A stretch of 64,000 bases of DNA from Haliotis cracherodii (Eukaryota), in assembly GCF_022045235.1 (NCBI RefSeq), contig NW_027266297.1, forward strand, positions 34,844,001-34,908,000. The letters run 5' to 3'. Positions within the stretch are counted from its first letter, which is position 1. The number at the start of each line of letters is the position of its first letter. Both the position numbers and the translations under genes were made by a program. The notes beneath the pieces were generated by a model. The model did no database searches. It worked only from the letters and a program-made list of their open reading frames with translations, and was not told the origin of the DNA. Below, in pieces: positions 38,101-41,100 of the stretch.

Positions 38101-41100
38101 TATATGTGTACATTGTAGCCATTGTATCATCCTTCCTGCAACTAATAATCCAATTTAATATTTCTTTTCCTCCAACCTCTACAGCTGGGCTGCCAGGTGA
38201 GGGTTATACCCTTTCATTCACTTCAACAATCTCCCGCGATTGACTTATATATGTCTGCAAAAATTAAATAAAAAATTGAAACAAAATTCCACCACTGAAT
38301 GGATTTTTGCTAATTTTTACCTTCACCAGATCTGAAACTTCTGTATTTTGACAGTTGTCGCTGTCTCCTTTATTCAAATTTCAAATAATCTTTTGACACA
38401 AGTGGGATAACTCTATGACTGACAGACTTCTTGATTAAGTATCGCGGGAGACTGTTAATCATTCATTCCATATTTTTTTTCTTTTCAAGTTTGAAGAATT
38501 CCACACTGTCCTGTCACATGACACCCCAATCCAACTTATGCGTCATTTTAATCCCTTTCCACCCAAACACTGCGTGTTTTAGCATTCTGATATTGGTGGA
38601 TCGAGGTTAAAGCGAACATGGTGCGGGGACCTATTTCTGATCTGTCACTCTTCATGGCTAATGCGCATCCAAAGTAGCCAGAAACTGACTCACAGCTAGA
38701 CATTCACATGGAATGAAAACACAAATGTCAAATTTTCAAAGAAGGTCACACCACTGAATGTTGCTAGTCACAGATAGATATCACGAGAAAGGAATGGAGA
38801 CCAATCTGCATACAGCCTTTAGATATGAACACACTATTTGGGAATGCCTGCTCATCACACAACCAAACACACGTGTAGGACACGATACCTTAGATTATCT
38901 AATGCATGGCTGCCTAGACACACATGGGCCACAAAAGCTTTCAAGTTTGTAATTCTTTGAAGTAAATAAGTCAGCACGTTCATTTTATTTCAGAAACCGT
39001 TATGAATCAATGTACCTTGAGTATGACCTTGAGAATATGTTACAAAGGGAATATTTATTAAATAAGATCAGCATGATAGATATCTTACATATACATGCTT
39101 TGTCTGCTCTCAAGCATGAATCAACTTTCCTCAAAATGTATTTTCAAAATATTTTTGTGATTTATTCATTCTGAAAGAAATTTGTTCATAAAAAAATACA
39201 TCTTATTTATGCATGCTGACATTCCTAATAAAGTCTTGTCCTATTTCGAAAAAGCGAAGTTTTGATTTTAAGATTTATGACAACAAAGGCATGTTGTCAT
39301 GGAAATATACGAGATATGATTTTGCATGCAAAGGGGTTCTTTTCAGTTGAACATGAAATTTGATAAATAATAATTCCGTACATTTCATGGGCTTTTGTTT
39401 GGATAAGTTTGATATCATACACCATCTGATATTGTAACGTTCTTCTGTCTCTACTTACATAGATGTGGAACTTTAATCTGTGATGTGTGATATTTTTATT
39501 TTGACAGAAAATAAGGATTTATGTTCATTTGTGTTGTTTAGGATGAATGCCCAAAGATGTAGCACTGAAAATTCAAAATACAAGTTTTAGATAGGTCACT
39601 GACTGGAACATTACATACCAAATTGAAATGGTTATACCAGACATGAGTATATTCAATTGTCTCACACTTAATGGTAACTGTGGAAGAGACTTTGAAAATG
39701 CAACTTTTCCTGTGTTTATGCTATGAATTCAACAGAGCCATTGCGCACTCCCCATGCAACACCATGTGCATCAGTTGTACAACTGTGCGCGATGCCGACA
39801 TGCTTTCTGCTTCAATAGATCTGTGTGCACAAAGCGCATATGCAACCAACCATAGGTCGAAATTATGTTATGGGCATAATTTAGCAAACCTCCCAAAATA
39901 TTTCGGATATTTGCGCAAATAAAAGACAAAATTGCAATCATGCCGCAAAGCTGTTAACGATCGCAAAATTGTATTGTAGAATAATGATGCCAACCTTGTT
40001 TTGCAGATTTTAGCGCGTTTTGTCGTTTGCGTACATTATGTATGTTTGAATCTTTTATAGTGCCTTATCAACCTCTCAACCTTCATGCTGACCCCATTTC
40101 TGCGAATGAGATCGATGTTGTGTGGGATCCTCCCCAGGAAGCAGATTCCATCGACAGTTACGAACTTTATTACAATGACTCACATTTCCGCCAAAATGTC
40201 CGCTTGAGTATCAACCCGCCTGTCGCAAAATTCCGCCTGACAGACTTGACCCCAGACACTGTGTATCATATCCAAGTGTCCGCCAAGTCAAAAAGAGGCG
40301 AGGGACCCAAGACGCCCACGATACAAGCAAAGACGAAACAATTCAGTGAGTTTTTCCGCAGTGGTTGTAGTAACTGTTGCAGTATTGTTGATAAGTTTTT
40401 TGTGGCCCATATATAAGTATTGTCTGTGGCAGTGGTCCCATTGTAATCAGTTCTTTTTTCCAAGCCACTGTGTTAAGTTAACTGTTGTAGTGCAGTACTT
40501 TGCGAGATTTTTGTGTTTGATTTTATGATGAAAGAGCTCACGGGATCTTGGTCAAAGGTAAGTGAACAGAAGTAAATTATGCAATATTTGATTCAGGAAC
40601 TTGATTAAGATCATTTGATTTTCAAATCATAATGAACCTGATCTTGACATTTCTTCTTTTAAAATCTTCCAATATTAAGAAATAATGTTTTTCGTAATTG
40701 TCATAAGATATCAAGAAATTAAATTGCCGTTAGCAACAGATGACAACGTAATACAGGAACAGGTAATATTTATTATGAAGAAAAAATGTTTCTGTGCATA
40801 AAGTAAGACTAGTTTAAGGATTATAGTTTTTGGTAGCATCATTGGTTATATTATTATGTATCCTGATCCCTGAAATTCATTTGTTTGGTGTATATATTTA
40901 GAGTGTATATACTGTTTAGAAATGAGATCCATACCCACTCGATGTTGTTGTTGTGAACACTATACAGTGAGAATAGCTGTTGTAGATATTCAATGGATCA
41001 AAGCTCACATACCAAGTTTAGTCCAGATTGATTGTGATGTGTTATATATTAAGGGACTAGATTTAAGGTAAGTGAGATTAGCATAGAGAAAGGTCACGGA

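Follow-up and report, generated by a model that had tools for sequence, protein, structure and literature searches.

Does a Lar-like gene of the abalone Haliotis cracherodii carry a genuine optional exon of only 12 nt, and what could the four residues encoded by it, AGLP, do in the receptor? LAR-family phosphatases are central synapse organizers, and in vertebrates tiny optional exons set their binding partner. The question is raised by a 64,000-nucleotide stretch of the abalone genome (assembly GCF_022045235.1, contig NW_027266297.1, positions 34,844,001 to 34,908,000; hereafter, the 64-kb window), for which a first-pass annotation, made from the letters alone, had proposed a frame-preserving microexon of this size. 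We conclude that the exon is very probably real, and we have high confidence in its interpretation as a genuine optional exon by which AGLP is inserted into the hinge joining the second and third fibronectin type III (FN3) domains of abalone Lar (the FN2-FN3 joint), likely as a hinge-length insert. The features concerned are listed here, with all coordinates being positions within the window and on the plus strand unless stated otherwise.

35785..35983, plus strand: upstream constitutive exon, the C-terminal half of FN3 domain 2, ending in VLTTQG plus G.
35984..40060, plus strand: 4077-nt GT..AG intron removed when both microexons are skipped, containing the two of them.
37147..37161, plus strand: 15-nt sister cassette microexon, cag/CGCCCATATTTGATG/gtaagt, phase 1-1, encoding APIFD.
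38141..38184, plus strand: 3' splice region of the 12-nt exon, with a CTAAT branch-point candidate, a pyrimidine-rich AG-free tract and ACAG.
38185..38196, plus strand: 12-nt cassette microexon, CTGGGCTGCCAG, phase 1-1, encoding AGLP.
38197..38202, plus strand: 5' splice site of the 12-nt exon, CAG/GTGAGG, matching 5/6 consensus positions.
40061..40345, plus strand: downstream constitutive exon, the whole FN3 domain 3, beginning with (V)PYQPLNL.

The splice signals of the 12-nt exon are canonical and strong, and the frame is preserved: the exon is within 30 nt in length, has canonical AG/GT borders, and contains no stop codon. The ACTAAT branch site proposed in the first-pass annotation is present at 38141-38146, with the candidate branch A (in CTAAT) 40 nt 5' of the exon. 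The AG-free tract, the ACAG acceptor, and the CAG/GTGAGG donor are likewise read where they had been placed, the tract without AG spanning 38119-38182 and the acceptor tACAG ending at 38184. Every border, namely that at 35983 (...ACA CAA GGA G/gtaaga), those of both microexons, and that at 40061 (tag/TGCCTTATC), is in phase 1, in agreement with the proposed phase 1-1, and the last G of the 12-nt exon opens the Val codon of VPY. Since all borders share this phase, the reading TQG-APIFD-AGLP-VPY suggested earlier is correct, and the joint has four possible readings: TTQG/VPY, TTQG-AGLP-VPY, TTQG-APIFD-VPY, and TTQG-APIFD-AGLP-VPY.

The 64 kb were further scanned for sites with a donor matching at least 5/6 consensus positions, at least 12/16 pyrimidines, a YAG acceptor, no AG in positions -17 to -3, and a length that is a multiple of 3 within 6-30 nt. 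The scan returned one match on the plus strand, the 12-nt exon itself, and two on the minus strand; the chance expectation is ~0.1 such site per 4-kb intron, under criteria that were picked after the candidate was known. The genome (1.18 Gb, 80 contigs) contains one copy of the region 38080-38300, which therefore is not a repeat, and transposon exonization was rejected as the origin of the exon.

By its sequence features, the host gene is a Lar-type (type IIa, LAR-family) receptor tyrosine phosphatase. Residues 429-1938 of 2057 of the Lar-like isoform X5 of Haliotis rufescens (XP_046366897.1; P0167) are encoded by the window, where tblastn yields 23 exon matches from 35036 to 63728. With the exons searched singly and not as one joined model, both the FN3 run and the phosphatase domains expected of the family are found: window exons match Pfam fn3 above the cut-off, and the exons 57138-57440 and 61012-61308 match PF00102 (Y_phosphatase) with 54.6 and 67.1 bits (cut-off 20.9). 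The Ig part lies upstream of the window, and Ig families appear in the precomputed Pfam list of isoform X5. In the segment AVRIKARS, the window and the H. cracherodii model have K, and the H. rufescens model has Q.

The position of the inserts in the protein is well defined. The upstream exon corresponds to positions 32-83 of the 84 positions of the Pfam fn3 profile and ends five residues later, and the downstream exon corresponds to positions 2-83 of 84, with the match opening at its fourth residue; the inserts fall precisely at the junction where FN3 domain 2 ends (VLTTQG) and domain 3 starts (VPYQP). The best solved matches of the downstream exon are the third FN3 domains of PTPRF, PTPRD, and PTPRS (LAR 6tpw 208-299, PTP-delta 4yh7 496-586, PTP-sigma 4pbx 486-574, respectively). 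In human LAR (6tpw), the match to the second FN3 domain ends at KTQQ (205) and that to the third one starts at PAQP (208), the sequence being KTQQ-GV-PAQP. Thus the FN2-FN3 joint is nearly linker-less both in the skipped form and in the solved human LAR.

Inclusion of the 12-nt exon is indicated by RefSeq models and by conservation. A search of representative proteins, dominated by giant multi-FN3 proteins, supplied a full-length freshwater-mussel Lar (P0009), and its FN2-FN3 part was used to collect Lar proteins of molluscs; the Haliotis counts given here are of isoforms among the matches listed, that is, 15/28 of the Haliotis cluster plus one 2-member cluster.

H. rufescens, 8 isoforms read: no insert in 1 (X4), AGLP in 2 (X2, X10), APIFD in 1 (X1), APIFD+AGLP in 4 (X5, X7, X9, X12).
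H. cracherodii, 2 isoforms read: AGLP in 2.
H. asinina, 6 isoforms read: no insert in 2, VGPT in 1, APIFD+VGPT in 3.
H. rubra, 1 isoform read: APIFD+VGPT in 1.

The RefSeq Lar-like models of abalone contain the very same exon as the window, and the joint sequence of isoform X5 (XP_046366897.1) is identical to the window translation, AGLP included. All four linker variants foreseen (0, +4, +5, and +9 aa) occur letter for letter among the eight H. rufescens isoforms, with AGLP in 6/8 and APIFD in 5/8; in the RefSeq isoforms the two exons are included or skipped independently of each other. The 12-nt exon is already annotated in RefSeq, hence it is no discovery by itself, and the models are computed ones that come without description, tissue data, or comparative analysis. 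Still, this 12-base exon and all four linker variants were predicted correctly from raw sequence alone. A further optional mini-exon site was observed in the same gene, upstream of the window: isoform X4 of H. rufescens has ten extra residues (GGNPWVVKYE) at about residue 137, between Ig1 and Ig2, which are missing in X5.

Inserts of the same size were found at the same joint outside the genus.

Gigantopelta aegis: AGPP in 3/4 isoforms.
Pomacea canaliculata, 8 isoforms read: AGFQ in 5, GFQ in 1, no insert in 2.
Babylonia areolata: AGYQ in 5/6 isoforms.

Conservation in related species, on which the first-pass annotation had staked its proposal, is thus observed: a 12-nt-sized, four-residue insert with the pattern [A/V]-G-x-x is annotated at the identical joint in seven gastropod species (four of Haliotis, Gigantopelta, Pomacea, and Babylonia) that span Vetigastropoda, Neomphalina, and Caenogastropoda. 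Within Haliotis, three of the four positions differ between AGLP and VGPT with the length fixed, and APIFD and the flanking domains are unchanged.

Transcript data were considered for the region 35700-40400 as contigs of four sequencing runs (X22, X23, X24, and X3), none of which is recorded as RNA; X22-X24 are small and guessed to be RNA, and the tissues are unstated. Run X3 is RNA-like with some pre-mRNA: the two constitutive exons have depths of 98.6 and 116.9 and the intron 11, the exon contigs stop precisely at 35983 and begin again at 40059/40061, and the whole intron forms one 4134-nt contig at ~1/10 of the exon depth. The joint 35983>40061 (GT..AG, 4077 nt skipped) is seen in one contig each of X24 (a 200-nt contig of depth 5.7, with 84 letters on the shorter side) and X3 (depth 64.8, 28 letters on the shorter side). 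Hence a form skipping both microexons exists. Compared with the window, the 4134-nt intron contig of X3, from an organism denoted B, shows 46 letter differences and 11 gaps. Among the differences listed (8 more exist), none falls in 38006-38257, and the segment 36926-37967 around the 15-nt exon has one substitution.

Several observations weigh against the exon or its proposed role. No inclusion contig is listed for X22, X23, X24, or X3, where the sole joint skips both microexons; junction reads for inclusion had been suggested as a check in the first-pass annotation, and the four runs yielded the double-skip joint only. No contig listed has letters between the two sides of the joint, and over 38185-38196 the depth in X3 is the same as that of the intron background, 11, as it is over the 15-nt exon. 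Among short database protein fragments, 0/22 matches span the joint, all of them being single-exon frames from genomic contigs. In the models of a number of gastropods (Littorina 0/7, Patella 0/4, Lottia 0/1, Physella 0/10, Lymnaea 0/1, Bradybaena 0/2), no insert of the 12-nt type or of any other kind occurs at the joint, and conservation of the four residues is poor. Moreover, since the RefSeq isoforms are computed, a small exon could in principle have been spread between related annotations by protein evidence from other species. Finally, the functional interpretation is by analogy only.

As for the transcript contigs, the missing inclusion is absence of evidence and not evidence of absence, because contigs drop rare and minor forms, the tissues are unstated, and 106 loose contig ends exist beyond those listed. 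The exon depths in X3 exceed the sum of the joint and intron depths by about 23-41 units, which leaves room for other forms but is no proof of them.

The same observations bear on two other explanations of the annotated insert. It could be an annotation artefact, a four-residue piece placed by homology to the model of another species and never spliced in, as the lack of a joint-spanning fragment in the protein collection and of inclusion in the four runs would suggest. However, the inserts differ by species (AGLP, VGPT, AGPP, AGFQ, AGYQ), and therefore each was read from its own genome. Further, the branch point, the pyrimidine tract, YAG, and a 5/6 donor are present at a chance of ~0.1 per intron, and all four combinations are modeled in one species, which makes an artefact extremely unlikely. 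To our knowledge, alternative RefSeq variants are built only from transcript alignments. Alternatively, the insert could be a real splice product but mere noise, arising when strong cryptic sites are used occasionally and annotation turns the products into functionless isoforms. The finding of only the skipping joint among the four runs, the difference between AGLP and VGPT within one genus, and the several gastropods without such an isoform would fit this explanation. Yet seven gastropod species of three major groups share the 12-nt length, the phase, and the exact position, and noise sites are not expected to hold both frame and size across such distances. Besides, inclusion is the commoner state among the listed isoforms of most species (6/8, 2/2, 4/6, 3/4, 6/8, and 5/6), and we consider splicing noise very unlikely as well. 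A genuine optional exon remains our preferred interpretation.

The most likely role of this exon, by analogy, would be that of a hinge-length insert like mini-exon B (MeB) of vertebrate LAR. Of the other vertebrate mini-exons, MeC is located within a later FN3 domain, and MeD adjoins the membrane. According to the available part of a published account (PMC6078854), MeA and MeB sit in the Ig region; MeB, which reads ELRE in PTP-delta and PTP-sigma and DQRE in LAR, is a four-residue insert in the Ig2-Ig3 linker that lengthens the linker and resets the spacing and orientation of the domains. MeB and the abalone exon are alike in that both are frame-preserving optional inserts of four residues in an extracellular inter-domain linker of a receptor of the same family, and both are combined with a neighboring mini-exon. 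In contrast to MeB, which lies between Ig2 and Ig3, the abalone 12-nt exon lies between FN2 and FN3. No examined vertebrate isoform has an insert at the FN2-FN3 joint (Protopterus 0/15, Sphaeramia 0/8, Pleurodeles 0/1, Cynoglossus 0/1), and on this ground the abalone exon is not an ortholog of any vertebrate LAR mini-exon.

A second similar case, newly reported for mouse Ptprd and Ptprf (PMC10883964, in its available part), is a 12/15-bp microexon located between the membrane and the last FN repeat. It belongs to the same family, has 12 and 15 bp (four and five residues), and falls in an extracellular inter-domain stretch. As far as that part of the report goes, however, the mouse microexon is juxtamembrane with one per gene, whereas the abalone has a tandem pair at the FN2-FN3 joint; the report indicates that such sites still turn up even in mouse.

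The following mechanism can be proposed. Addition of AGLP (4 aa), APIFD (5 aa), or both (9 aa) would lengthen the otherwise tight FN2-FN3 joint and make it a more flexible hinge. A longer hinge would alter how far apart, and at what angle, the membrane-proximal stalk and the ligand-binding head (Ig1-3, FN1-2) stand to each other, and the altered geometry could change the choice of partner or clustering. We infer such tuning of ectodomain length or flexibility, as already suggested in the first-pass annotation, from the position of the exon between two fn3 matches and from the analogy with MeB. The LAR-RPTP ectodomain is described as a flexible rod, 35-40 nm long and arranged like beads on a string, in a cleft of 15-20 nm (PMC6078854, same part), and changes of the hinge are therefore plausible levers. 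Within Haliotis the residues of the 12-nt exon vary at constant length, and therefore a spacer is a better fit than a binding motif; for the P-[IV]-I-F-D exon, a more sequence-specific role would fit.

We also considered that the 12-nt exon might be a neural, Srrm (eMIC)-dependent microexon of a conserved bilaterian program, with a neuron-specific role rather than that of a general hinge variant. Like the abalone exon, the exons of this program are very short cassettes that preserve the frame; they occur in neuronal genes of surface and signaling function and have a long AG-free zone, a CU-rich tract, and a CUAAY branch site (PMC8797185, in its available part). LAR-family genes do bear neural microexons in vertebrates, at least as far as the available text of PMC10883964 describes them, and the 64-nt AG-free zone, the CUCU-containing tract, and the CUAAY branch site of the 12-nt exon are among the features listed in PMC8797185. 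However, the eMIC exons described there have a UGC close to the 3' splice site, whereas the nearest one (TGC) is 48 nt upstream of the abalone exon. The remaining features were compared with those of the 21 constitutive acceptors of the same gene that have placeable borders. The AG-free zone of 64 nt (median 37 in the constitutive acceptors) is reached by 3/21 of them, with at least 64 nt each, and the pyrimidine fraction of 0.72 is exceeded by 2/21; both values are within the range of the constitutive exons. Being not distinctive against this set, eMIC-type architecture was rejected as a distinguishing mark of the 12-nt exon, and we view dependence on this program as possible but rather doubtful. 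The 15-nt sister exon has a TGC at -5, as do 4/21 constitutive exons.

Apart from the proposed hinge role in abalone, the inserts at the FN2-FN3 joint were compared in other animals.

Biomphalaria glabrata: 20-residue insert ending in PQPIFD, 10/12 isoforms.
Octopus sinensis, 8 isoforms read: VPVNKPVIFD+QS in 5, VPVNKPVIFD in 1, ES in 1, no insert in 1.
Octopus bimaculoides, 5 isoforms read: VPVNKPVIFD in 4, no insert in 1.
Chiton Liolophura, 8 isoforms read: GMSRLYP in 6, DDSAKA in 1, no insert in 1.
Nemertean Lineus: fixed 13-residue insert, 8/8 isoforms.

The motif P[IV]IFD closes the insert in Octopus and Biomphalaria, as it does in abalone APIFD. No insert at this joint was found in the cephalopods Octopus vulgaris (0/1) and Argonauta (0/1) or, among bivalves, in Mercenaria (0/11), Mya (0/7), Ruditapes (0/7), and single models of Sinanodonta, Potamilus, Solemya, and Mactra, a set that covers heterodonts, unionids, and Solemya, with oysters, scallops, and mussels outside it. 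The same was observed in the arthropods Limulus (0/12) and Centruroides (0/15), five spider models and one beetle, and in the annelid Capitella.

Tentatively, the FN2-FN3 joint could be an old molluscan, perhaps lophotrochozoan, splice-code site, independent of the vertebrate MeA/MeB code, although we hold this broader proposal to be far from assured. It may comprise a tandem pair of microexons, the first of which ends in P-[IV]-I-F-D (abalone, Biomphalaria, Octopus), and the second may be very short and variable, with a length of 12 nt in gastropods and, as it appears, of 6 nt in Octopus. If so, the combinations of paired microexons would set the length of the hinge and so select trans-synaptic partners. 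Irrespective of this broader proposal, the data indicate that molluscs have an optional mini-exon site of their own in this receptor, at a hinge (FN2-FN3) other than that of the vertebrate one, with four length variants in abalone. For synaptic adhesion receptors, the site would offer a natural and independent case of a hinge-length code, testable in animals with large identified neurons. We found no paper describing Lar microexons of molluscs or abalone at the FN2-FN3 joint, with the proviso that supplementary tables might list such exons, and the mollusc-wide pattern of optional microexons at this hinge seems to be undescribed.

Two observations on individual species concern the same joint. 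In O. sinensis (P0275, P0175, P0272), there is an apparent two-residue (6-nt) microexon, the first residue of which varies with the preceding exon, being E if this is the FN2 exon and Q if it is the PVIFD exon. The V of the next exon becomes L when that exon is joined directly to the PVIFD exon. These changes fit phase-1 exons, provided that the PVIFD exon ends in C instead of G. In isoform X7 of Physella acuta (P0337), VLTTQG runs straight into DPEAPPENV and the third FN3 domain is missing, suggesting that a whole domain is skipped at the same phase-1 border.

An inverted repeat was detected downstream of the 12-nt exon.

38225..38456, plus strand: inverted repeat with arms at 38225-38240 and 38441-38456, 16 nt each, 94% complementary, 200 nt apart.

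The repeat starts 28 nt 3' of the donor of the 12-nt exon. The predicted fold of the region 38130-38470 has z = -4.06, with 0/100 shuffles folding as well, and a small predicted hairpin covers part of the donor. Hence the repeat is a possible RNA stem with a putative role in splicing. Among the listed differences of organism B, none is in the arms and 7 are in the loop, a distribution that is not significant.

Other features of the window were noted as well. The exon starting near 46284 is preceded immediately by 128 N (46155-46282), and its acceptor is not placeable. Two copies of a repeat resembling a short interspersed nuclear element, with similar reading frames, are located at 35548-35757 and 41484-41753, both on the minus strand. 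The part 35700-35756 is found in hundreds of contigs, with a summed depth of ~150,000 in X3, and the family is very abundant and transcribed in this genome. Finally, long frames of a repeated unit (...SLGIGV.TCT...) at 45216-45953 on the plus strand, located in the intron that follows the FN exon ending near 45077, look like a minisatellite.

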